The translations under genes and the position numbers were made by a program. This document shows, piece by piece, positions 1 to 63,872 of a stretch of DNA of 64,000 nt. The first letter of the stretch is position 1, and each line of letters begins with the position of its first letter. The notes beneath the pieces were generated by a model. That model saw only the letters and a list, made by a program, of their open reading frames with translations. It did not search any database and was not told the origin of the DNA. Location of the stretch: positions 300,405-364,404 of the IMG/VR virus record IMGVR_UViG_3300031787_007614; one strand, written 5' to 3'.

Positions 1-3000
1 ACACTCTTCCATATGCCAACAGTTTGCTGTTTGGTGCAAAAGTTTGGGTTGACGACAATGGAGATGGTTTGTGGCAAGTGATTGAAAAACAAAACATTTT
101 CAGCGAAGTTACTTCAATTGCACCAGAGTATCTAGATGCCACAGAGGCATATGGATCAAGCGTATCTCAGGCCACTAATAGATTTGCTGCTTTAGTCGGC
201 AGCCCAAGATATGGATTTCCAACGTCTGCAAATCCAAAAGGCGGCGTTTACACTTATGTAAGAAGCACAAGCGATGTTTACCAGCCAGCTAGTCCTGTAT
301 CAAGCGGCGATGCGCTATTGACTTTGGATATAACTGGAGCAAGAGCGTATGGTACTTCAGTAAAATTTGGCAACAAAGACTGGGCAGTTGCAGGAGCACC
401 ATTGAGCTTGGGATCAGCCAGTCAAACCAATAACGGCTATGCCTGTGTAATCTATCGTGACACTGGATCTTATTTGCCAGACACCAACCCATATTTTAAT
501 TGGCAACTGTTGACCACTCCTGGTAGTGTGAGTGCAGACCAAGGAAGATTTGGCTATTCTGTAGCAATGAGTCTTGACGAACGTTGGATGTACGTTGGTG
601 CACCTGATGTAAACAAAGTGTATGCTTATGGCCGGGTTGACTGGGAAGATCAGTACTTTAGAACTGTAGGCAACGGATCTACAAAAGTATACTTGATCAA
701 TGATTACATCACTATAAGTGCAGCCACACAATTGCGTGTCACAGTTGATGGTGAGATTCAAACGTTGAACACAGATTACACAGTAAATGCTGCGTTGAAC
801 ACAGTGACATTTGTGTCTGCACCTGTAAGTGGATCTGATATTATCATTCGTCGTATTGCATTGCAAGATCTTGATGGCGCTGATTATTTCAGTGTAACAG
901 CCACTGGTGGATCGGGATCAGGAGCCTTGTTCACAGTTAGCAGACGTCGCGGAACTGTCACAGTTGGCGTTCAAGATGGCGGTACAGGTTATACTGTGGG
1001 CAATACATTGACTATTCCTGCTACCAGTTTTGGCGGCGGCACAGTGCCAGCCAATGATATTACATTTACGGTGGGCAGTGTAATAAGTGGTGAAATTATC
1101 ACTATTAGCACACCATCGTACACACCGCCAGCATTGGCAACTGTATTCTCATTAAATGAATATTTCTATCAAGTTGCACTGACAGACAGCACAATATACA
1201 GTTTTCAAATTGAAGTTGATGGAGTGCTTCAACGACCAAACATTGACTACACATTTAACACTTCAACCAAAGATGTTACCTTCTTGAATTCACCAGCCAG
1301 TGGCACCAGTATTTTGGCTCGAGCCAAAGACTATTGGTTGTATGTTGACACACTCACTGCTGGCGGTCTAGCTGCTGGCGCTCAATTTGGCTACAGCGTG
1401 AGTTGTAGTACTGATGGTCGTCAAGTCATGATTGGTGCGCCGTATGCCACTGCTGATGGAGAAACTGAAGCAGGTGTGGTATATGTGTTTGATCGCAATG
1501 TGCAAAAGTTTATCTGGAACAATGATCCAAGCTCGTCAAGTTTCACGGTGCTAGGTACACCAGTTGCGCCGGTGAGTGTGATTGTAAACAATCAGTTCTT
1601 GACCAATCAAAACTCCACCACACAAGATGCAAGCAATACCTTTACGGTCAATGGATCTACTGTGACTGTGAATCTTGCAAGCAATTTACAATCAGGTGAT
1701 ATTGTTGAAATTGAAACCAATCAGTTTGAACTGTTGCAAATCGTAACACAAGACGCTGTAGCTGAATTTAGCAACTTTGGGCAGAGTGTTGATCTCTGCA
1801 AATACAATTGCAGTCTATACGTTGGCGAACCGCAAAGCAGCATCCAGATTTACAAAGGTGGTGTGGTTGAACGAAGTCTAAATCAAAGCAGAGTGTATGG
1901 TGTAATTACTGCGCTGAATGCCAGTCCTGCCCTCACAGCTGGCAATACTTTGCGGGTGAACAATATGGATGTGGCGGTACCAACAGCACCCAACAACACT
2001 GTGTCTGGTTTGGCCGCAGCCATTAACGCTGCTGTGCCCAATGTAACAGCCACAGTGACCAGTGGCCTGCTCACACTCAGCGTGACAAATTTTGATTCTG
2101 CGCCTGCTGGAAACAAACTACAAGTGGCCCCAGGCAGCATAGGAGCAGCATTTGACAGTCTTGGATTTAACACATTTGAATGGACACAAACAATTCAAAG
2201 CCCGTACCCTGTAAAATTTGCTGGGTTTGGCTCCAGTATCAGCGTTGATGATACTGCAACCACTTTGGTAGTAGGTGCTCCTCGTGGAACCATGTACTTG
2301 ATCACAATATTTGATGACTATGTAGAGTTGTTTGATGCAGGTGCAACATCATTCTTTACCACTATAGATCAAAGTGGTGCTGTTTACACATATGATTTGT
2401 TGAACAGTGCCAACAGTAGCATAACCAATCCAAGCAAGTTTATTTTTGGTAATCAGATTGCCATAACTTCAATTGATTATCTGGATCAGTTGGGAGTTTC
2501 GGTTGACTACACATCTGGAGTGCTTTGGATGGGCGCACCTGGTACAGACTTCGGGGACAGTAGCAGTAGCAATTACGGTCAAGCTCATGTGTGGCAAAAT
2601 GCCACACGATCACCAGCTTGGGCTCCAATTAGAATTGAACAACCAGTTGTTGATGTGCGTCTGTTAAACAGCGTTTTCTTGTATGACAGAATATCATCGG
2701 CCACAACAGAATTTTTAGACTTCTTTAATCCATTGCAAGGCAAGATACTTGGTGCTGCTCGTCAGAACATTGATTACATTGGCGCAGTTGACCCTGGCAG
2801 TTACAATGTAGGACCAGTTGGAGTGCGCGGCACCACCTGGGGCGCAGAACATGTGGGAGAAATTTGGTGGGATATCAGTACAGTAAGATTTATTGATCCC
2901 AACCAAGACGATATTGTTTACGCCAGCCGACGTTGGGGACAAGTGTTTCCTGGCAGCTCAATTGATGTGTATCAGTGGATTGTGAGTTCTGTTCCACCTG

Positions 3001-6000
3001 CTAACTATGCTGGTCCTGGAACACCTTACAGCATATCTAGTTATACTATCAACACTGTGTTAAGTCGAGATGGCAACTTTAACACTCAATACTTTTTCTG
3101 GGTGCGTGGTATCACTGATGTGGCCACACAGAAAAATAAAACTCTTAGTGCAGCAACTATTTCTCAGTATATTGAAAATCCTCGATCAACTGGCATTGCA
3201 TATCTAGCACCAATTAATTCCAGCACAGTTGCATTATACAATTGTGAAACATTAATTGAAGCTGAAGATACCATACTCCACATTGAATTTGATAAAGAAC
3301 TAACCAATGCCAATGTTCACGTGGAATATGAACTGATAGCTCAAGGGCGTGCTGATGGCTTCTTGAGTGATAATCTCTATAGAAAACTACAAGATTCATT
3401 CTGCGGAGTTGACACAGCAGGTAATATAGTGCCAGACATTAATCTGGGGCCAGCTGAACGTTACGGAGTACAATTCCGTCCTCGACAGTCAATGTTTGTT
3501 GATAGATTTGCGGCACTAAAAAATTACATTGTTCGAGCCAATACTGTATTAAAACAGTACACAATAAGTGAAAGCCGTAGCTTTGCTTTGTTAAACAGTG
3601 CTGAACCTGAACTGCCATCTACAACGATAGTTAATGGAGCAACAGTAATTAACTGGAACAAGCGGATACCTAACTTAGAAATTTTAACTTATAATTTTGA
3701 AGCACCTGGCGGCGACGCCATTGGTTACAAATATCTTGTGGTTAGCGACAGTGACAATCGAGGTCTTTGGACAATTTACACTGTAGAAGAAAATCCAAAC
3801 ACTGGCAATCCAGAATTGGTATTGAGTCGAGTGCAAAATTATCGCACAACAGACTACTGGAGTTACATTGACTGGTATCGTCCAGGATACAATTCCAGTA
3901 TCAAACCTGTGGCAGAAGTTCCAACTTATTCTAGCTTGGCAACAATATCTGTGACCACAGGAGCCAGCGTAAAAGTAACTGCAAATGCACAAGGCAAATT
4001 TGAAATTTATCTAAAAACTGATCTTGGATTTGAGCGTGTGGGACTTGAAGATGGAACTATTGCAATTTCTGCAGAAATCTATGATTATGCTCTTGGAAGA
4101 TTTGGATTTGACGTTGAAGTGTTTGATGCACAATACTTTGACCAAGAACCTGTAATTGAAACAAGAAAAATTATCCAAGCTATCAATGAAGAATTGTTTG
4201 TGGATGATTTGGCCATTGAACGAAATCGCAGTTTGACTTTGATGTTTGACTTTATACTCAGCGAGTTTGCTGCTCCTGAATGGCTGGTCAAAACATCACT
4301 GATTGACGTTGATCACAGAATTCGAGAATTGCTGCCATTCCAGAATTACAGCCGTGACAATCAAGAATTTGTGATTGACTACCTTCAAGAAGTAAAACCA
4401 TATCACGTGCAAGTGCGCGAGTTCAATCTCACGTACTTTGGCAACGACTTGTACCAAGGAGATTTAACAGACTTTGACGTTCCAGCGTTTTATAACACCA
4501 CATTACCTGTACCACAATATACAAGTCCTATCTTGTTGCCGTACGCACACAGCGCGGCTCAAATTAGTAACACACTAAGTGATACTGAATCAACTGATCA
4601 AATTTGGACAGAGTGGCCTTACAGTCAGTGGTACAACAATTATCTGTTGAGCGTGGAAACAATTGTTGTTACATTCAACGGAACTGGATACACTACTGCA
4701 CCTCAGGTTACCATAGTAGGAGATGCGGTAACGCCCGCAGAAGCCACTGCTTTGATTAATTCAGCAGGACAAGTAGTAGCAATCAACGTAACCAATCCTG
4801 GCAGCGGATACCAAGCAACTCCCGCCATAGTGTTTTCAGGTGGTAACGGCACAGGCGCTCAAGCCTATGCCAACATGATTAACAGAAACTCAGCTGACTT
4901 TGATGCACAAGTTTACAACGTTAACCCTGCGGTAAATTTTGATCAATGGGAAATTGATACCAATAGCAACATACCTCTTACCACGGTGAGAGCATTCAAA
5001 ACAGTAATCAAGTACGACCGTTATCAGTATCAAACATCAGTACAAACTTGGAGTTCTACTGGAATTTACCTCAACGGAACTTTGGTACGTTATGATGATC
5101 GTGTGTGGAGTGCTGACAGTAGCGACGGAAGTTCAGCTGTGGTTGGCCCTACATTTGATCTTGAAGATTGGGTGGAAGTTGACCCGGGCACATTGAGTGG
5201 TGTAGACCGTACCATGGGCTACTATGTGTCTGGCATTAACTCGCCAGGACTTGAATTGCCTTTGTTGATTGATGGTGTTGACTACCCAGGAGTTCAAGTG
5301 TGGGGTGATTACTTCTTGGGCACAGAAATTGTTGATGCTCAATACGAAAGTGAATTTACAGACATTGAATTAGGGCTACGCAACACAGATGTCAATGTAG
5401 ACGGCGGCGAATTTATTGGGCCTTACGAAGGACATGCGCCAGAAGAATTGGTCAACGGATCAGAGTTTGATACATTGGACATAAGAGTTTATACTCGACC
5501 AGGATCTGACTGGCAAATGGACGGTCATGGATTCCAAATTGGTGTTATCAACTATGTGTACAACCCAGCAACATCTTATATTTTGAGCTGGAGCGGAGTG
5601 GTAGATCATCCAGTGCAAGTACTGGTTAGCAATCAAACGTCAGGGCGTACCATGACATTAGATGTGGATTACTACATCAATTGGGGCAACGAAACTGTAG
5701 AAATTGTTCCTAGCGAAGGATTTGCCACTGATGATGTTGTGAACATTTCAGTATATGAATTAGGTGGCGGCAACCAGTTGTATCGGGACAACTATACTGG
5801 TGCAGAAATTGGAAATTCAGTGATAATTCCAGTAGACGATGCAGAAATCTACACTGTGGCTATTTTTGTCAACGGCGAATCGTCTGCTGTCCCGTCTTGG
5901 GAACCATACTACGATGCAGATGCCTGGAACATTTTGCAAAGTTATCCAATCAACATGGTGGTTATTAATACCAGTGTTTACTACAGATCAATACAGGCAG

Positions 6001-12411: not shown

Positions 12412-13165
12412 TGAACAAGGTTATGTGATACTGGCTGTCAACTCTGACAAAGTTGACTACTTGGATTGTGCTAGAACATTGACCAAAACAATCAAACGTT
12501 GGGATCCAGGTGCAAAGGTTTGTTTGATCACAGATGCCAAGCAAAGCAACGATCCCGTATACGATCACTATCGAGTGATTGACAATGTGGATCGTGAAAA
12601 CCCTTGGGCCAATGATTGGCAGGTATTCAAGAACTCACCGTTTAGGGAAACCATAAAGCTAGAAGCAGACATGCTGATTGTGAGTGACATATCGCACTGG
12701 TGGACCTTGTTTAGGCATCGTGATGTTGTGGTATCAACTGGTTGCAGAAACTGGCAAGACCAAGTCAGTCTAGCTAGAAACTACAGATCAGTGTTTGATG
12801 CAAACAACTTACCAGATGTGTACAATGCCATAACTTACTGGCGATTGAGCCTCACAGCTCGAGAGTTCTTTATGTTAGTGCGTGATATATTTGCCAACTG
12901 GCCGCAATTCAGGCAACTGTTGAAGTTTGCACCCGAAACAGCAGATACTGATCTAGTGTATGCCATGGCAGCTGAAATAATGGGTGTAGAACGTGTGACC
13001 TTGCCATTTGTTTCATATCCAAAAATTGTACACATGAAACGGCACCACGCTGGCACTGAAACTGAACACTGGGGTCGTGAACTGGTATGGGAATATTCAG
13101 ACTGGCGCCTGCGTATCAACACAGTGGCACAGTGGGGTGCATTTCATTACGGGCGAGGCTGGTGA
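12398..13165 (+). CDS. Putative glycosyltransferase-like protein (paralogue of upstream gene)
   Basis: SPFRETIKLEADM aligns with SPWEQTLVLDADY of the upstream ORF. Confidence 0.5.
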   Translation: MRPIDEQGYVILAVNSDKVDYLDCARTLTKTIKRWDPGAKVCLITDAKQSNDPVYDHYRVIDNVDRENPWANDWQVFKNSPFRETIKLEADMLIVSDISHWWTLFRHRDVVVSTGCRNWQDQVSLARNYRSVFDANNLPDVYNAITYWRLSLTAREFFMLVRDIFANWPQFRQLLKFAPETADTDLVYAMAAEIMGVERVTLPFVSYPKIVHMKRHHAGTETEHWGRELVWEYSDWRLRINTVAQWGAFHYGRGW

Positions 13166-49928: not shown

Positions 49929-50711
49929 ATGAAAATCTCTCGCTCCTTGATCGACCCAGTGGCACTCAGTTCCGTTGGCATGTTATTTCCAATTTGGACA
50001 GTGATCTGGTTGACAATAAACTGGTCATGGACTACATTTTTTGTTGTGCTATTGACCAGTTGGTTTATGGGAATTCACATCACTATGTTTGCGCATCGCG
50101 CCTGGTGTCATCGCGCCTGGAAACCTAGTTCAGTAGTTGATTTGTATGGACTTGTTGTATTTACCTTGTGCCTAGTAGGCAACAGCATTGGATGGGTGGG
50201 AATTCATCGCGAACATCATGCACATTGTGACACTGACCGTGATCCACATTCTCCATATCATAAGAGTCGGTGGGCTATTCAATTTTTGAGCTATTTCAAT
50301 CAAGTCAAAACCAAATACATTGTGGACCTTGGTAGAGATTCTCGCCATCTTTGGTTTTATCATTGGTACTGGGCCCTCAACATAGTTTGGTTTGCATTGT
50401 TATTTGCAATTGATCCTGCCCTGGTAGGATTATGGATAGCAGTAATTGGACTCACAGTGTTCAAACTTCACACAATCAATTCATTGTGTCATCGCACACC
50501 TTGGTTCTTGCTACCTATACACAATGATGACACCAGCAGTAACAGTGTGCTGATGGTGTTATTAAACATCAACAATGGCGAAGCTTGGCACAAGAACCAT
50601 CATCAAAATGCAGCCAACTATAGATTCAGTCAACGCTGGTATGAAATTGACCCACCTGCCAGAATAATTGAACTACTGGCGCAATTCAAGCTGGCCAGTA
50701 TCAATCGCTGA
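49929..50711 (+). CDS. Membrane fatty-acid desaturase
   Basis: HRAWCH, HREHH, HKNHH; DPHSP. Confidence 0.9.
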   Translation: MKISRSLIDPVALSSVGMLFPIWTVIWLTINWSWTTFFVVLLTSWFMGIHITMFAHRAWCHRAWKPSSVVDLYGLVVFTLCLVGNSIGWVGIHREHHAHCDTDRDPHSPYHKSRWAIQFLSYFNQVKTKYIVDLGRDSRHLWFYHWYWALNIVWFALLFAIDPALVGLWIAVIGLTVFKLHTINSLCHRTPWFLLPIHNDDTSSNSVLMVLLNINNGEAWHKNHHQNAANYRFSQRWYEIDPPARIIELLAQFKLASINR

Positions 50712-51584
50712 CCCATCAAATGGGCTAACATAGCCCATGGCTCTCCACAACAGACGGTTTTCAATATTTTCAAATGCAGGACGAGCATGCATGCTCAACC
50801 ACTGGCAATTGATAATTATTTCATAGTCTTGCCAATGATGAGCGTACTGGTACTTGGGCTGAGTTAGAAATTTGTACAGATAACTGAACCATGCTTGTTG
50901 TCCAGCGTTTGGAACTGGTGTTTTGCCAATATAGAATATTGGATTTTGCATGGGTGACCAATGGATGCCCGTGGCCCCTGATTTGTTTTGAGTAACAAAT
51001 TTGTTAAATCCTGTTCTGCCTTGATAGTTAACGTCTGCAGCCATAGGCCCGTTATCTGTACTGCCTGAGTAATTGTAATAACACATGAGCTGATCCAGAC
51101 TTCTTAATAGTCCAACTGGTGTATCGGTTGCTTGCCTAAGATCGTTTAATGCTTGTATGCTGTTGGTAAATCCTGTGATGCTGCCTTCAGTATGTTCTAC
51201 CCCGTACAAACACAAAGCATCGGGACGTTCTGCGGCAGTTCTTCCTGGTTCGTTGCAGTGCCAAGGCAAATCATCTGGCATGCCAAATAATCCAGTGATT
51301 TCACCGTGGACATCTTTCTTACCAGTGACTCTGATAATTTCTTTGTTGGTTTGTTCGACAAATATTTTTTCTTTGGCTGGAAGATCGTTATTGAGATCAT
51401 CAAACACACCAGAAGTAAATTGATGATATTGATCAATGGTTAACGGTTGCGTGTTATGGATTACAACCAGCAAGTTGGTATAAGGTAGCGTTCTTAATTG
51501 ATCGCGTTCGGTGCTGTTTACATCTAGCACGTTTAGTTGATCTACATGCACTACCCAGCCGTTTGGATCTAAAGTTAATTTCAT
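50673..51584 (-). CDS. TauD/TfdA-family dioxygenase
   Basis: GWVVHV, WHCN, T.F.N...A, Y.HHWQDY.....NQW.SMHAR. Confidence 0.75.
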   Translation of the reverse strand: MKLTLDPNGWVVHVDQLNVLDVNSTERDQLRTLPYTNLLVVIHNTQPLTIDQYHQFTSGVFDDLNNDLPAKEKIFVEQTNKEIIRVTGKKDVHGEITGLFGMPDDLPWHCNEPGRTAAERPDALCLYGVEHTEGSITGFTNSIQALNDLRQATDTPVGLLRSLDQLMCYYNYSGSTDNGPMAADVNYQGRTGFNKFVTQNKSGATGIHWSPMQNPIFYIGKTPVPNAGQQAWFSYLYKFLTQPKYQYAHHWQDYEIIINCQWLSMHARPAFENIENRLLWRAMGYVSPFDGSAIDTGQLELRQ

Positions 51585-52624: not shown

Positions 52625-53494
52625 TCACACTAAAGTATTAGAAATGTTGCAGTGATCAAAGTTAAGAGCAATGCGATGCACCACTCGATTCTGAATGTTT
52701 TCACAGCGCCATCTTTTGTGAATACTTAACCATTGTTCACTTAACACAATGTCACCGTCTTGCCAATCGTGGTGATATGTGTATTTTTCTTGCTCCACAT
52801 GTTGTCGTAATTTTTGAATTAGGGCATCGCTTTTGTCTTTGTCAAAACCCAGTATCTGATGAATTTGTAAAAACGAAAAAAACATGCCTGTGACACCAGC
52901 CTGGTTGGTGTGTAACAAACTTGGATACCAATTGTGGTTGATGGCATTTGAATCTCGACTGGTGATTGTGTAAGTGTCTTCAGAGATCACCCTAGCATCA
53001 AACCCCATGACCAGTTTTAAATCTTTGATTTGTTCTTTGAGTTCTTGGTCAAGATCTTGATAACTCAAAATGTTGTTGATCCAACTGGTTCGGCTGCCAA
53101 CAGAATCTTTTACTGAATACAACCAAATCAACGGATCTCGGTCTTCACTACCGGTTCTATTGCAGTGCCAATCTAGATCACTCACATGTTCAAACACACC
53201 TGGTTGTCCATGATGGTGACCACCGCCACCTACTCTGACAATTTTACCACGCCCGCCTTGTACTAATTTTGTGCCCGGTGTTGGCGTATTAGCCGGCGCC
53301 ACTTGCTCACATGCACCAATTTTTTCACAGATGTCAACTTCGTCTCCGGGCAAAAGGTGTTGATCGCGTATCACAACCACGGTGTCTTTGGCAGCAAGCC
53401 AAGCAATGGTATTCATCTCTTGCTGTGAAGCAGAACGTAAATCAATATCAGTAATGATTGAAGTCCAACCATTTTCGTGTAGTTGTATTTTCAT
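52625..53494 (-). CDS. TauD/TfdA-family dioxygenase
   Basis: VVIRDQHL, WHCN, Y.HDWQDGDIVL.EQW.SIHKR, RVVHRI. Confidence 0.8.
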   Translation of the reverse strand: MKIQLHENGWTSIITDIDLRSASQQEMNTIAWLAAKDTVVVIRDQHLLPGDEVDICEKIGACEQVAPANTPTPGTKLVQGGRGKIVRVGGGGHHHGQPGVFEHVSDLDWHCNRTGSEDRDPLIWLYSVKDSVGSRTSWINNILSYQDLDQELKEQIKDLKLVMGFDARVISEDTYTITSRDSNAINHNWYPSLLHTNQAGVTGMFFSFLQIHQILGFDKDKSDALIQKLRQHVEQEKYTYHHDWQDGDIVLSEQWLSIHKRWRCENIQNRVVHRIALNFDHCNISNTLV

Positions 53495-54824: not shown

Positions 54825-55262
54825 TTATTGTGCTTCTTTGTGAGCAGCCAGGGCTTTGGTGAAACGATTGGCATGTGAGCGTTCGGCTTTGGCCAGTGTT
54901 TCAAACCAGTCAGCAATCTCGTCTAAGCCTTCGTCTCTGGCAGTTTTGGCCATGCCAGGATACATGTCAGTGTATTCATGTGTTTCGCCATGAATAGCAC
55001 TTTCCAGAGCCTGCTCAACAGATTTGGCACTCATGCCAGTGGCGGGATCTCCAGCACCACCTTCGATCAAGTATTCCATATGACCGTGTGCATGTCCAGT
55101 TTCGCCTTCGGCAGTTGAACGGAACAAGGCAGCAACGTCATTGTCGCCTGCTACGTCGGCCATGTTTGCGAAATACAAGTATCGACGATTGGCTTGCGAT
55201 TCTCCGGCAAATGCCGCCTTCAAGTTTTCTTCGGTACGGGTACCTTTTACAGATTGTGTCAT
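54825..55262 (-). CDS. Rubrerythrin (four-helix diiron domain)
   Basis: [35 protein letters not shown]; GGAGG SD. Confidence 0.92.
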
Positions 55263-55609: not shown

Positions 55610-56086
55610 TTAGGCAGCTCGTAAACTCTTAAATCTATCTGCCGCGTATGATGCTGCAAATGCTTCTGGCTTCACAAACGGAATCACATTGCATGTTCCT
55701 TTGATGTAGCCCACAGCTTGCGAGATCACACAACTTGAACCGTATTGTTCGTCTGGGTTGATGTCCAAGTGAACTTCAACTTGACGGCCTTCTAGTACGT
55801 CAGCCAGTTTCAAATACAGTTCTGAAACCTTGTACACTTCGGTCATCAAACGCATGGCAGGTTTGCCTGGTTTCACGTCCCACACACGCTCGCGTTGAAC
55901 TTCGCCAAACAGTTTGCAGCCGTTGTTGCCGTTGATGTGTACCACAATGGCCAACACATAGTCGGCATACCAGGTACCGTCAATTTTGATTCGTTCAGAG
56001 TCGCAGCCAAGGTAGATGCGAGTTTCGGGCGTTTGTTTCTGGATAAATTCTGCTACTGATGCTATATCGAGCTTTTTCATTTTCAA
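55610..56086 (-). CDS. RNase H-like YkuK/DUF458 family protein
   Basis: IYLGCDS, RL..EV..., EVHLDIN, KPEAFAASYAAD. Confidence 0.8.
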   Translation of the reverse strand: MKMKKLDIASVAEFIQKQTPETRIYLGCDSERIKIDGTWYADYVLAIVVHINGNNGCKLFGEVQRERVWDVKPGKPAMRLMTEVYKVSELYLKLADVLEGRQVEVHLDINPDEQYGSSCVISQAVGYIKGTCNVIPFVKPEAFAASYAADRFKSLRAA

Positions 56087-56109: not shown

Positions 56110-56186
56110 TGGTACCCCAGGAGGGATTCGAACCCTCAGAATTCTCCTTTTGAGAGAGACACGTATTCCAGTTCCGTCACCGGGGC
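56110..56186 (-). tRNA. tRNA-Leu(CAA), short variable loop
   Basis: TCTCT-CT CAA AA-GGAGA; 5-nt V region; A73, CCA. Confidence 0.88.
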
Positions 56187-56576: not shown

Positions 56577-57350
56577 TTATTGCTTTGCGGCAATCACGCT
56601 TAAATGCCAACCTAGCTGTTGATTGACAGCCTGGCGTTGTGCATCGCTCATGGCAGCAAACCATGGTTCCAACACATAATTTCCTTGTTTGTACTGCTCT
56701 ACATTGTACATAAAACAGTAATCTTGCTTGATGCTTTTGATATCAAAGTGTACGTCCAGCAGTTTTTGTATTTCTCCTTGACTGTAAACTCTGGCATATG
56801 GGCAGTTGTCTTGCGCTTCAAACTGGTCCAGCCCAGACTGAATCATTGCCCATTTCCAACTGTTGCGAGCATACACTAGGAAACGAAACTCCCCATCAGA
56901 TGCTAGACTTGCGTAAGCATTGCTGACCACTTGTTCTACATTGGGATAGTGATGCAATACACCACAAGCATACACCATATCAAATTGTCCTAGCCCTGCA
57001 ACACGCTGACTGTCGCCTGCGTCCATGTGATAGAATTCAGCATCTAATCCCATAACAGTAAATCTCTGCTCACAAAGTTCTATGCTACGACTGCTAAGAT
57101 CAATCCCAACGTATTCAGCACCATGCCGTACAAATTGTTCAGCATCAGATCCAATGCCGCATCCTAGTTCTAGCACCCGCCGTCCCTTGCAGTTTTCAAA
57201 GTCGGCCAACTGCCACAAATGCGGCCCAACAAACCATCTACGACGATTGATGTTGTTCCAAAATTCTTCTGTGCCTTCTGGTGCCAACCCATGCTTTATA
57301 TTACAAGGTTGTTGATCCCAGTACTGTTCTATTTGAGTAATTGTAGCCAT
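56577..57350 (-). CDS. Class I SAM-dependent methyltransferase
   Basis: VLELGCGIGSD, GIDLS, FDMVYACGVLHH. Confidence 0.9.
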   Translation of the reverse strand: MATITQIEQYWDQQPCNIKHGLAPEGTEEFWNNINRRRWFVGPHLWQLADFENCKGRRVLELGCGIGSDAEQFVRHGAEYVGIDLSSRSIELCEQRFTVMGLDAEFYHMDAGDSQRVAGLGQFDMVYACGVLHHYPNVEQVVSNAYASLASDGEFRFLVYARNSWKWAMIQSGLDQFEAQDNCPYARVYSQGEIQKLLDVHFDIKSIKQDYCFMYNVEQYKQGNYVLEPWFAAMSDAQRQAVNQQLGWHLSVIAAKQ

Positions 57351-57388: not shown

Positions 57389-57465
57389 TGGTGCCCCAGA
57401 GGAGACTCGAACTCCTAAAATTTGGCTTCTAAGACCAACACGTATACCAATTCCGTCACCGGGGC
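57389..57465 (-). tRNA. tRNA-Leu(UAG), short variable loop
   Basis: TTGGT-CT TAG AA-GCCAA; 5-nt V region; CCA. Confidence 0.88.
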
Positions 57466-58646: not shown

Positions 58647-58721
58647 TGGTTGCCATGGACAGTTTCGAAATGTCGACCTATCGCTTATCAAGCGATTGCT
58701 CTTCCTCTGAGCTACACGGCA
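58647..58721 (-). tRNA. tRNA-Ile(GAU)
   Basis: ATCGC-TT GAT AA-GCGAT; CCA. Confidence 0.9.
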
Positions 58722-58813: not shown

Positions 58814-58888
58814 TGGTGGATGTAAGTAGAGTCGAACTACCACTTGACTCCGTATGAAGGAGGCGCACTACCATTATGCTATACATCC
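58814..58888 (-). tRNA. tRNA(CAU): elongator Met or Ile2
   Basis: G1-C72, A73, loop TT CAT AC; identity not resolvable by eye. Confidence 0.85.
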
Positions 58889-58892
58889 ATGT

Positions 58893-58984
58893 TGGTACCC
58901 CCACCGGGAGTCGAACCCAGATGAACCAATTATCTGTTGCTTACGGGATATAAATCCGCCGTTTTACCATTAAACTATAGGGGC
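58893..58984 (-). tRNA. tRNA-Ile(UAU)-like with 22-nt variable arm
   Basis: Loop TT TAT AT, A31-C39 mismatch, canonical T-arm, CCA; 92 nt. Confidence 0.7.
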
Positions 58985-58989
58985 ATGTC

Positions 58990-59064
58990 TGGGGTGTCGT
59001 ATGAGAATCGAACTCATGACAGCGGAATCACAACCCGCGGTTTTGCCACTAAACTAACGTCACC
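58990..59064 (-). tRNA. tRNA-His(GUG)
   Basis: G-1:C73 encoded; TT GTG AT loop. Confidence 0.92.
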
Positions 59065-59288: not shown

Positions 59289-60413
59289 ATGAACAAATAT
59301 TGTCCAAAACCATTTGTTAGTATTCATATGTATACTGATAAAGATCTCAATCCAACTGTTAGGCCTTGTTGCAATTACAAACCTATCAAGCAGTACGCAA
59401 CGATTAATGATTATTTGCAATCATCTGAACTAGCGTCTCTTCAGCAACATTTGCTTACAAAAGAATCATTGCCAGATGGATGCAAGGCATGCAAAGTAGA
59501 CGAAGATAATAACTTGCCTAGTATCCGAAACAAGTATATTAAAGTGTTTGAGCATGAAACCAAAACTAAAATTGTTGACTTGGAAATTTTCCCTGGCAAC
59601 GCATGTAATCTCAGTTGCTTGTCGTGCAATCCTTCTCATAGTACCAAATCAGGTCAGGAATATGCCAAACTTGGATGGATTAAACAATCAATAGTGATCA
59701 ATCACGAAGATCATGCACTTGAAGTTATTAAACAGTTGCCAGACCTTAAATCAATAGGTTTTATTGGCGGCGAATTTTTTGTAACCAAACACAATATTGA
59801 ATTGCTCGATGCGGTTATTGAAAAAAATCTTAAAACACGAATTATTACCAATGCCACTCAACTAACCAAAAAACATCTTGAGCGGTTACAAAAAATATCT
59901 GACCTTGATGTGATGGTTAGTGTAGACGGTACTGGGCCAACATTTGAATTTTTACGCTATCCGGCACAATGGTCAGTTGTGCAATCAAACATTGTTGCAC
60001 TACAACAGGCATTGCCCGGAGCAAAGATACATTTGTCGGCAGTGTTGCAATTTTTAAATTTGCAAAATATCATTGAACTGTTTGAATACGCCAATGTCCG
60101 TCGACTGCCATTTAATGTGATCCCTTTATCTTATCCTGTTTGGCTACAGTCAGAAGTGCTTACCACTCTCGAACGTCAGCAGTTGATTGCAGTTATACAA
60201 AAACAACTAACAGTTGCAAAACTTACCAAAACACAAAAACAGTTAATGACTGATACATGTAGTATGCTAGAAACAATACAGCACTCACCTGCTCAACGAG
60301 AACAGTTTGTGTCTCGAACAAGCCAGCTGATTCGACTGCGCAACATCACACAACACACAATCAACTCAGTGTTTGGTGTGCTAGAAAATTTAGCGCAAGA
60401 AGTTATACAATAG
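59289..60413 (+). CDS. Twitch/SPASM-domain radical SAM protein inserted in the tRNA array
   Basis: CNLSCLSC, GGEF, N-terminal PCC and CKAC; TAAGTA 5 nt upstream. Confidence 0.85.
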   Translation: MNKYCPKPFVSIHMYTDKDLNPTVRPCCNYKPIKQYATINDYLQSSELASLQQHLLTKESLPDGCKACKVDEDNNLPSIRNKYIKVFEHETKTKIVDLEIFPGNACNLSCLSCNPSHSTKSGQEYAKLGWIKQSIVINHEDHALEVIKQLPDLKSIGFIGGEFFVTKHNIELLDAVIEKNLKTRIITNATQLTKKHLERLQKISDLDVMVSVDGTGPTFEFLRYPAQWSVVQSNIVALQQALPGAKIHLSAVLQFLNLQNIIELFEYANVRRLPFNVIPLSYPVWLQSEVLTTLERQQLIAVIQKQLTVAKLTKTQKQLMTDTCSMLETIQHSPAQREQFVSRTSQLIRLRNITQHTINSVFGVLENLAQEVIQ

Positions 60414-61033: not shown

Positions 61034-61126
61034 TGGTGGAGCAACTTGGAGTCGAACCAAGAATGTTTACCACGAGGGGACGGATTTACAGTCCGCCGAT
61101 GCACACGCCATAGCATCAATTGCTCC
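61034..61126 (-). tRNA. tRNA-Tyr(GUA) with extended D-arm
   Basis: GCGGA-CT GTA AA-TCCGT; D stem GATGC/GCATC; 18-nt V region. Confidence 0.85.
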
Positions 61127-61875: not shown

Positions 61876-62774
61876 TGGCGGACTGAGAATACATCCTAAC
61901 CCAGTAACACCTCGGACATTATTACAAACCTTGCGAGTCTGCTTTCTTCCGATTTCCACTGCAACCATATTGCTATGTATCACAGTCTGTTACCAGTATC
62001 GCCGTTTTTAAAGACAGGCAGTAGTCTTGTCATCACATGCTACTCTACACCATCTATCCCGTTGACCTTTAGAGCCATTCACTGTCGCTAAACAGTTACG
62101 AAACTTCCAGTATAAACAGATTTCACCTTGCGAGTTACGTCTGACTGTATTGCCTTGCGGCTACAGCATTAGATACTTTTCACACATGACCGAGTCAGTC
62201 TTTGCTTTTATGTTAGATAGTGGTTTTGAAGCCACAGCCTATTCCTTAACAGGGAATTGCTCTACGATGAGCTATATCAACCTACTGCGATGTGCTGACT
62301 CAGTTGCTTCATACTCTTTTGGAATACAAAATACAACACACCACGTTCCTTTTGTCTTGCGAACTACTCAGACGTCTTTTGCGATCAGTGTCGGGTCTCG
62401 GCTTTCGCGTACCTCCACCAACCACTCAAACTGCATACGAGCCCTTGGGTGCAACCCCTCGGACCGATACGCTACCCTTTCTCATACCAATTAACTGGGC
62501 TGGTTTTGTATAGAAGTCAGCACCACCTGTTACTTTTCTGCAACTCCGGTTACCCTTGCGGGCCGGTAAGTTACAGCTCTTTCCTATACTCCCAGCGTCA
62601 TTGTTACAACCACCGGTCTTATCAGTGATCGGATCCTCACGGACCTGAGCAGGCTTGTTTACATGAACCATTGCTGGCGGACTTATGTAGGCATACATCC
62701 TTTGGCTGGGTCACCCCAGTTATTCTTCGTACAGCTGGGCGAACCATACTGCACAGGACAATAAACTGCCCTAT
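61876..62774 (-). ncRNA. ~900-nt highly structured ncRNA, GOLLD-like candidate
   Basis: Own consensus promoter, many GCAA/GAAA tetraloop hairpins on the minus strand, long-range complementarities, no credible ORF, heads a phage tRNA array. Confidence 0.65.
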
Positions 62775-62900: not shown

Positions 62901-63872
62901 ATGATCACTGAAATCTTAACCTATCACCACAGTCTCGACTGGAACATTGAACAATTCGTTGATAGCACATGTCTAGCAAACATTGTTCAGCCACACTGGC
63001 CAATGGTAACTTCTTCCAAAGGAGGATTGATACCAACAAATAAACCCAGCCGAGACTTTTTTGAGCTCAATAAAAAACGAGGACGTCCTACTGAACTTAG
63101 GAACAGTACCATTGACGCCTTGGTCAGTCTTGTGGCAACAAAATTGCATCTCAACGGATTTGTTACGAATGTGGTAGCAGAATGCAGTGGAAGCATGCAT
63201 GCCTTGTACACTGCATCCATGGTGAGCTTGCAACACCAATTACCAGTGATTGTTTTTTGTGCTGATAATTTAGTTGATGACGAACTTCACATGTGGCGAT
63301 TTGCCAGTATGGGTGCATTGGATCAATCCTCAGGAAGAGCATTTGACTCAACCAGTACTGGATTTCGAATGGGTAGAGGCATGGCTGCAATGTTGATAAA
63401 ACATCCAAGTGTAAAATTCAACATGAGTGCATTTGCCACAATCAGCAATTATATCTTTCGTACCAACCCCACACTCATAGCCAATCCAGGTGATGCGCAC
63501 CAATTGGCCAGAGATATTTCTGGCATCAATTTTGACACCATTGATTTTTGGAATGCACATGCAACAGGCACTCCAGTGGGAGATCAATTTGAGTACAATG
63601 TTTTTAATTCTTTAGTTCACAAAGACATACCTATTGTCAGCTACAAAAGCCGCATAGGGCACTGTATCTCAGCCAGCGGCGCCATTGAAATGTGCATGAG
63701 TTTTGACGATTACCGTGCAAAAACCCTAAGACCCAATGTGTTAGCTGGTGATCTCATAGTCAAAGATTCAAGGATCATCGTAGATGCTGTGCCGTTTCCG
63801 GGCAAACGCATACTCAAGGCCAATTTTGGATTTGGCGGCAAAAACAGTTTTTGCCAAATTGACATTGAATAG
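62901..63872 (+). CDS. Beta-ketoacyl synthase (FabF/FabB-like, short)
   Basis: AECSG catalytic Cys, NAHATGT, SYKSRIGHCISASGA, NFGFGGKN; TAAGTA 6 nt upstream. Confidence 0.88.
   Translation: MITEILTYHHSLDWNIEQFVDSTCLANIVQPHWPMVTSSKGGLIPTNKPSRDFFELNKKRGRPTELRNSTIDALVSLVATKLHLNGFVTNVVAECSGSMHALYTASMVSLQHQLPVIVFCADNLVDDELHMWRFASMGALDQSSGRAFDSTSTGFRMGRGMAAMLIKHPSVKFNMSAFATISNYIFRTNPTLIANPGDAHQLARDISGINFDTIDFWNAHATGTPVGDQFEYNVFNSLVHKDIPIVSYKSRIGHCISASGAIEMCMSFDDYRAKTLRPNVLAGDLIVKDSRIIVDAVPFPGKRILKANFGFGGKNSFCQIDIE

Follow-up and report, generated by a model that had tools for sequence, protein, structure and literature searches.

How a bacterial virus could read the rare isoleucine codon AUA through an unmodified-C-free UAU anticodon, and why the tRNA that would do so carries a 22-nt variable region, are the questions raised by one tRNA gene of a freshwater jumbo phage. 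The gene lies in the window analysed here, namely the last 64,000 nucleotides of the 364,404-bp viral record IMGVR_UViG_3300031787_007614 (positions 300,405 to 364,404), which has direct terminal repeats and whose sequence recurs in freshwater and lake metagenomes from many studies. The original prediction, made from the sequence alone, described a tRNA(UAU) with a class-II-like arm, unusual for Ile, and an A31-C39 mismatch, sitting among tRNA-Ile(GAU) and a CAU tRNA, proposed that it would bypass TilS, and suggested that, together with the short-arm tRNA-Leu genes, the arm classes look swapped. Every element of that observation was confirmed, whereas its interpretation was only partly supported, and it missed the main point, namely that the insert is a conserved copy of an Ile(GAU) anticodon loop.

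A 92-nt tRNA(UAU) and its genomic setting

ARAGORN calls a tRNA-Ile(tat) at window 58893-58984 on the minus strand, and the Rfam tRNA model RF00005 scores it at 53.7 bits against a gathering score of 29 (E 1e-9 in 7.5 kb), with a full-length match to model positions 1-71 and a 19-nt insertion placed in the variable region. Read by hand, the gene comprises a 7-bp acceptor stem with G1.U72, a D arm of class I type (58961-58975) with a 4-bp stem GUUU/AAAC and the 7-nt loop AAUGGUA, an anticodon arm, hereafter arm A (58943-58959), with the stem GCGGA/CCCGU, the A31.C39 mismatch and the loop UUUAUAU, the anticodon UAU at 58950-58952, 22 nt between the anticodon stem and the T stem, a T arm (58904-58920) with the stem CUGGG/CCCGG and the loop UUCGACU, the discriminator A73 (58896) and an encoded CCA (58893-58895), all on the minus strand. 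The anticodon thus lies in a 7-nt loop with U33 and a purine at 37, and U33 is present in 135 of 137 family and companion UAU tRNAs. Of the isoleucine identity elements outside the anticodon in E. coli, A73, C4-G69 and U12-A23 are present in this gene, while 29-41, C29-G41 in E. coli, is G-C; across the family, A73 occurs in 102 of 105, C4-G69 in 48 of 72 and U12-A23 in 71 of 72.

The gene belongs to a cluster in a genome that carries 30 tRNA genes. A tRNA(CAU), called tRNA-Met by ARAGORN, lies 4 nt downstream at 58814-58888 (-), tRNA-Ile(GAU) with the anticodon loop UUGAUAA at 58647-58721 (-), and tRNA-His at 58990-59063, with a tRNA-Gln nearby. The tRNA(CAU) is also the commonest tRNA directly downstream in the family, in 30 of 90 contexts although CAU tRNAs are 8% of all tRNAs, a count in which shared ancestry of the arrangement was not controlled for; it could be a competitor tRNA-Met for AUG or a tRNA-Ile2. 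Three protein genes are embedded in the cluster, encoding a PF04308 RNaseH-like protein (55610-56086, -), a class I SAM methyltransferase (56577-57350, -) and a twitch-domain radical SAM protein (59289-60413, +; NF033640, 198.7 bits). A full-length GOLLD RNA (RF02032, 204 bits) lies at the upstream end of the cluster at 61880-62344 (-), with an embedded tRNA-like element at 62211-62281 that has an Asn-type GUU loop, and next to the cluster lie auxiliary metabolic-type genes, two TauD/TfdA dioxygenases, a rubrerythrin and a ketoacyl-synthase-like protein (50673-51584, -; 52625-53494, -; 54825-55262, -; 62901-63872, +). Outside the window, at 2616-3134 of the genome, the phage encodes a permuted (two-piece) tmRNA with the tag peptide ANDEKFLMAA, of a type typical of alpha- and betaproteobacteria and cyanobacteria, which is a hint to the host.

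A megablast of the tRNA cluster against cultured phages returned only an unrelated tRNA-Ser hit. The closest relative found for the tRNA-cluster region, a contig (L004) matched through the radical SAM gene at 80% amino-acid identity, has the same GOLLD arrangement (12683-13148) but a 178-nt spacer in place of the tRNA(UAU) gene, which is therefore dispensable.

A second arm tied to the UAU anticodon

To determine whether the insert is conserved, viral contigs were first scanned with a pattern that fixed only part of the anticodon arm and the T arm and left 10-40 nt free between them, and at least 119 contigs were hit, every one with the same long spacing. The 72 distinct full-length sequences align as a cloverleaf plus an extra hairpin that is 93.9% paired, 16 of 26 pairs show compensatory changes, including 7 of 7 acceptor, 3 of 4 D and 3 of 5 T pairs as well as pairs of the insert stem, and 0 of 500 shuffles reach the observed covariation. 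In the unconstrained insert the letters A-G-A-U-x-A were invariant. The reciprocal scan, which fixed only that loop and the T arm, gave at least 120 loci, and of 82 new distinct sequences 74 had a UAU anticodon arm just upstream, on very different tRNA bodies that include a cyanophage lineage with a reduced D arm and no encoded CCA. The remaining 8 included a few ordinary tRNA-Ile(GAU) genes, in which the motif is the real anticodon loop, and some odd cases. Among 1995 distinct tRNAs predicted in 229 loci, the motif lies 3′ of the anticodon arm in 132 of 132 long tRNA(UAU) and in only 2 others. Because both scans were anchored on family motifs, these counts are lower bounds and members with other loops could have been missed. 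One tRNA-like variant (locus L193, around 10040, +) has as its first arm a closed 7-bp hairpin with a 3-nt loop and no UAU anticodon, while its GAU arm has a 5-bp stem, and it may be a relative in which only the GAU arm can decode.

The anatomy of the module was derived from 98 distinct modules in 201 loci. In arm A, pairs 27-30/40-43 are 98-100% paired, and position 31.39 is A.C in 50 and C.A in 5, so the mismatch of this gene is real and recurrent. After a linker of 1-2 nt follows the extra hairpin, arm B, whose layers 1-3 are 100% paired with 3-5 pair types each, and whose fourth layer is G.G in 61, C-G in 29 and A.G in 8. Its 7-nt loop, of the general form YAGAUWA, reads CAGAUAA (59), CAGAUUA (35), CCGAUAA (2) or UAGAUAA (2), and a linker of 5-6 nt leads to the T stem. 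In the present gene the arm B core spans 58926-58940 (-), with a G.G closing layer, the 3-bp stem CAA/UUG and the loop CAGAUAA (58930-58936), and two weaker outer A-U pairs extend it to 58924-58942. The linker after the four-layer core is 5 nt when the outer-pair nucleotides are included; its last three nucleotides, CAU, lie at 58921-58923 (-), and its last base, U, acts as N48. Positions 15 and 48 covary (A15-U48 in 97, G15-C48 in 6), as expected for a normal tRNA core. In this gene arm B is thermodynamically marginal (-20.6 kcal/mol with it, -20.3 without it, MFE -20.9), and therefore its reality rests on the comparative evidence.

These findings bear on whether the gene could be decaying or inactive with a chance insertion, or a precursor whose insert is removed. 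The negligible folding energy of the hairpin, a whole-tRNA MFE z-score of only 0.94 and the lack of the gene in the closest relative of this region could be taken in favor of that view. However, more than 200 loci in very different phages keep the module with compensatory changes in every stem including the insert, and some phages carry it as their only annotated tRNA, for example Vibrio phage henriette 12B8 in the 3-kb stretch examined. Bacteria are not known to have protein-dependent tRNA splicing machinery, and 22 nt is too short for a self-splicing intron. Contigs from four metatranscriptomes cover the tRNA cluster and no deletion of just the insert was listed, although these are dominated by tRNA cross-matches from other organisms and so are uninformative either way. 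Decay or splicing is accordingly considered very unlikely.

Three further readings of the insert sequence were rejected. AUA in loop B could pair with the UAU anticodon, but a third of members have AUU there and overall loop-loop complementarity is not conserved. An apparent covariation between anticodon-loop position 38 and loop B position 6 (A38 with U, U38 with A) follows two clades and so represents about one event. An alternative pairing CAGAU/AUCUG in this gene would break the T stem, is less stable (-17.9 against -20.6 kcal/mol) and is not conserved in homologues.

The suggested class-II-like nature of the arm was not supported beyond its length. Like the bacterial Leu, Ser and Tyr tRNAs, this tRNA exceeds 85 nt and has a covarying stem-loop of more than 10 nt between the anticodon and T arms; however, class II arms start after nucleotides 44-45, end 1-2 nt before the T stem, have 3-5 nt loops and come with 3-bp D stems and a large D loop, whereas here 1-2 nt precede the arm and 5-6 nt follow it, the 7-nt loop is conserved in sequence, and the D arm is class I. 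Nor was the idea of swapped arm classes supported. The two 77-nt genes, tRNA-Leu(CAA) at 56110-56186 (-) and tRNA-Leu(UAG) at 57389-57465 (-), are real, with Leu-type D arms and A73 but a 5-nt variable loop, and since E. coli LeuRS needs neither the anticodon nor the long arm (PMC9976931) they are plausible Leu acceptors. Short tRNA-Leu is, however, a separate and widespread phage phenomenon (82 of 221 distinct tRNA-Leu genes in the 229 loci are shorter than 82 nt), and among loci with at least 15 tRNAs that carry the two-arm tRNA, 41 have a short tRNA-Leu and 30 do not, so the combination is a coincidence of two separate phage peculiarities. The phage also keeps a normal long-arm tRNA-Leu(UAA), two tRNA-Ser and a tRNA-Tyr; the last, a 93-nt tRNA-Tyr(GUA) at 61034-61126 (-), is an atypical class II tRNA that scores better against the Rfam tRNA-Sec model (29.8 bits, below threshold) than against the general tRNA model. 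Other phages hold tRNAs of class II length (84-89 nt) with Thr, Gly, Met, Ile(GAU), Lys, Trp or Gln anticodons and Leu/Ser-like D arms (loci L030, 6489-6575 and 9934-10019; L065, 9190-9277; L113, 2221-2308; L077, 1858-1941; L100, 3528-3613 and 10416-10504; L104, 404-489).

The amino acid at AUA and the carriers of the tRNA

AUA makes up 12.9 per 1000 codons and 22% of the Ile codons of this phage. To infer which amino acid it specifies, about 104,000 residues were aligned at a mean identity of 48% with a 343,632-bp relative that carries the same tRNA. AUA codons of this phage align with Ile in 33%, Val in 21% and Leu in 17%, AUU/AUC codons with Ile in 47-51%, Val in 17-19% and Leu in 12-13%, and Leu codons with Leu in 59-65% and Ile in 7-9%. 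In both directions the Ile profile fits AUA best, beating Val by 174-250 log-likelihood units, Leu by 369-629 and Ser/Tyr by more than 1300; the code is therefore standard.

This result weighs against a recoding tRNA charged by LeuRS, SerRS or TyrRS. A length over 85 nt, A73, an A15-U48 Levitt pair and G18G19 fit the minimal E. coli Leu identity set, which ignores the anticodon (PMC9976931), and precedents exist. Nematode nev-tRNAIle(UAU) likewise combines a UAU anticodon with a long extra arm and A73, but nev-tRNAs are true class II bodies derived from tRNALeu and are charged with Leu in vitro (PMC3333845, PMC4300185), whereas here the body is class I, the arm is inserted at a different point, its loop is an Ile anticodon copy and AUA behaves as Ile in silico. 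Bacterial allo-tRNAs, found in bacteria and metagenomes, also combine non-Ser/Leu anticodons, UAU prominent among them, with a long extra arm, but have an 8/4 or 9/3 acceptor/T structure, a long D stem with a tetraloop and G73 or U73 for Ser identity (PMC5389517), whereas this tRNA is 7/5 with A73 and a 4-bp D stem with a 7-nt loop. Moreover, A73 is an antideterminant for bacterial SerRS-type identity, which needs G73, and sub-lineages with G15-C48 bodies carry the same module. Insertion of Leu, Ser or Tyr by such a highly conserved tRNA is thus very unlikely.

The phage encodes neither TilS nor an IleRS-type synthetase, so the tRNA depends on host enzymes. Cultured carriers include about 40 Vibrio phages of the Thalassa group, in which the gene is annotated simply as tRNA-Ile(tat), 93 nt, henriette 12B8, Acinetobacter phage vB_AbaS_qsb1, and Synechococcus phages S-SRM01 and S-SKS1, whose reduced-D-arm members carry no annotation under the match, a practical point for annotation. 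With Vibrio harveyi and Thalassa-like phages, the Acinetobacter phage, and Synechococcus WH7803 and S-SKS1, the family occurs in cultured systems in which its role is directly testable. A scan of 185,579 species genomes for the arm A subfamily found only a handful of carriers, namely Pseudoxanthomonas, Rudaea, a Kiloniellaceae genome (twice), a Verrucomicrobiales MAG, and a contig labelled Bacteroidetes that holds 18 tRNAs and is probably phage. All four real bacterial carriers have TilS, so the proposed bypass of TilS was not supported as a replacement; the tRNA supplements AUA decoding instead, although it is, as had been suggested, a genuine UAU tRNA that needs no lysidine, and the phage itself has no TilS. 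In loci with only 2-4 tRNAs its companions are tRNA(CAU), Leu(UAA) and Arg(UCU), which serve rare A-ending codons.

No universal phage partner emerged when ORFs within 4 kb of the tRNA were clustered in 173 loci. The commonest family, the PF04308 RNaseH-like protein, occurs in only 24 loci, and the others are epimerase, metallophosphatase, an Rpb6-like protein, a phosphatase and unknowns. In the two bacterial isolates Pseudoxanthomonas jiangsuensis (L127, 5293-6926) and Rudaea cellulosilytica (L132, 940-1782), calcineurin-like metallophosphoesterase genes follow the tRNA(UAU) closely, 261 nt and 46 nt downstream, respectively, and a smaller metallophosphatase family is near the tRNA in 14 phage loci.

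A possible division of identity and decoding

Based on these results, we tentatively propose that this is a functional phage tRNA that reads AUA as isoleucine without a lysidine step, and that phages carry it, often with tRNAs for UUA and AGA, to supply A-ending codons that they use heavily. The gene, its fold, its conservation, the link between UAU and the GAU loop (exclusive but for the two other tRNAs noted above) and the Ile-like use of AUA rest directly on the sequence comparisons; expression, AUA decoding, charging with Ile, which we consider likely, and any recognition of arm B by IleRS, which is possible but less likely than not, are inferences from sequence. Loop B has G, A, U and A at positions 3-5 and 7, corresponding to G34, A35, U36 and A38, the anticodon-loop nucleotides that bacterial IleRS uses as identity elements, while the U33 needed for a decoding U-turn is always replaced by A or C, which fits a loop that must be recognised but must not decode. 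Ile identity in E. coli rests mainly on the anticodon positions, t6A37 and A73 (PMC9976931). Any UAU tRNA in an ordinary bacterium faces two problems, as E. coli IleRS is about 100-360-fold less efficient on UAU than on LAU, and on E. coli ribosomes an unmodified UAU anticodon reads AUG as well as AUA (PMC3575796). Since the carriers infect hosts as far apart as gammaproteobacteria and cyanobacteria and no neighbouring protein family is shared by more than 24 of 173 loci, the partner of arm B should be a universal host factor, and IleRS is the only one known to read G34-A35-U36. Arm B may therefore present to host IleRS, or to another factor specific for tRNAIle, the signal that a U34 anticodon lacks.

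There are reasons for caution. The loop B position equivalent to 37 is U in about a third of members although t6A37 is a strong determinant for E. coli IleRS, and the minor E. coli determinant C29-G41 is G29-C41 here. As a class I enzyme, IleRS is expected to face away from the variable region, and a 3-4 bp arm cannot obviously reach the anticodon-binding domain while CCA sits in the active site. Furthermore, the length of arm B varies from 3 to about 9 layers, which argues against its substituting exactly for a canonical anticodon arm.

The main rival, also possible and only slightly less favored, is that arm B of an AUA-decoding tRNAIle serves something other than IleRS. It could restrict U34 so that AUG is not misread, keep host U34-modifying enzymes off, be a handle for a modification enzyme, or protect against or titrate a host nuclease that targets the tRNAIle anticodon loop. 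The misreading of AUG by UAU shows that a fidelity problem exists, the weak 31.39 pairs (A.C or C.A in 55 of 98) suggest a tuned anticodon arm, and arm B always lacks U33. Anticodon loops without U33 (C33 or A33) are also enriched in phage tRNA-Ile(GAU), 8 of 65 against about 1% of other tRNAs (Vibrio phage Thalassa, L245, 1404-1479; L153, L235 and others), which hints at selection on Ile anticodon loops, as anticodon nucleases would impose. However, no known bacterial factor other than IleRS reads G34-A35-U36 specifically, the variable region is far from the decoding centre, and no candidate nuclease or enzyme co-occurs with the tRNA in the loci clustered.

A two-headed tRNA, in which either arm could stack under the D stem so that the same Ile-charged molecule would decode AUA through arm A or AUC/AUU through arm B, is very unlikely. 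Topologically either arm could be the anticodon arm, because arm A follows N26 directly and arm B is followed by a normal-length variable loop of 5-6 nt. In Vibrio phage Thalassa the tRNA(UAU) shares its D arm, variable loop and T arm with the adjacent tRNA-Ile(GAU), so that the module there looks like two arms placed where one anticodon arm normally sits, and a few real phage tRNA-Ile(GAU) genes have exactly the loop CAGAUAA or CCGAUAA. Nevertheless, the arm B stem has only 3-4 layers in most members, its length is variable, it never has U33, and all these phages with large tRNA sets also carry a normal tRNA-Ile(GAU).

How AUA is read as Ile without misreading AUG is a classic problem, for which the known answers are lysidine, agmatidine, ava2C, pseudouridine/inosine in eukaryotes and, in Mycoplasma mobile, a co-adapted IleRS and ribosome. 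The tRNAIle2(UAU) of the TilS-less M. mobile also decodes AUA without lysidine and has A37 after U36, but it is an ordinary class I tRNA that relies on an altered IleRS (Arg in place of Trp905) and on its own ribosome to avoid reading AUG (PMC3575796), whereas the phage tRNA has to work with unaltered host enzymes and carries an extra GAU-loop hairpin. In the E. coli thrS operator, a hairpin outside the decoding anticodon likewise copies the anticodon loop of the cognate tRNA and is read by the anticodon-binding domain of the synthetase, but that mimic lies in an mRNA and represses translation, whereas here it would sit inside a tRNA and promote charging, the binding being hypothetical. Database records name the gene tRNA-Ile, and full-text literature searches found no description of the two-arm architecture or its link to UAU, although their coverage was incomplete and prior description cannot be excluded.

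A mobile, host-independent solution carried by many phages would be a further answer to this problem. If the extra arm is an identity surrogate, which is possible but less likely than not, this would be the first natural tRNA in which the synthetase signal and the codon-reading signal sit on different loops, a principle of direct use for engineering orthogonal or anticodon-independent tRNAs. In that case the host IleRS would read the G-A-U-N-A loop of the extra arm while the ribosome reads UAU on the canonical arm, which would let phages decode AUA in any host without TilS and without an adapted IleRS.
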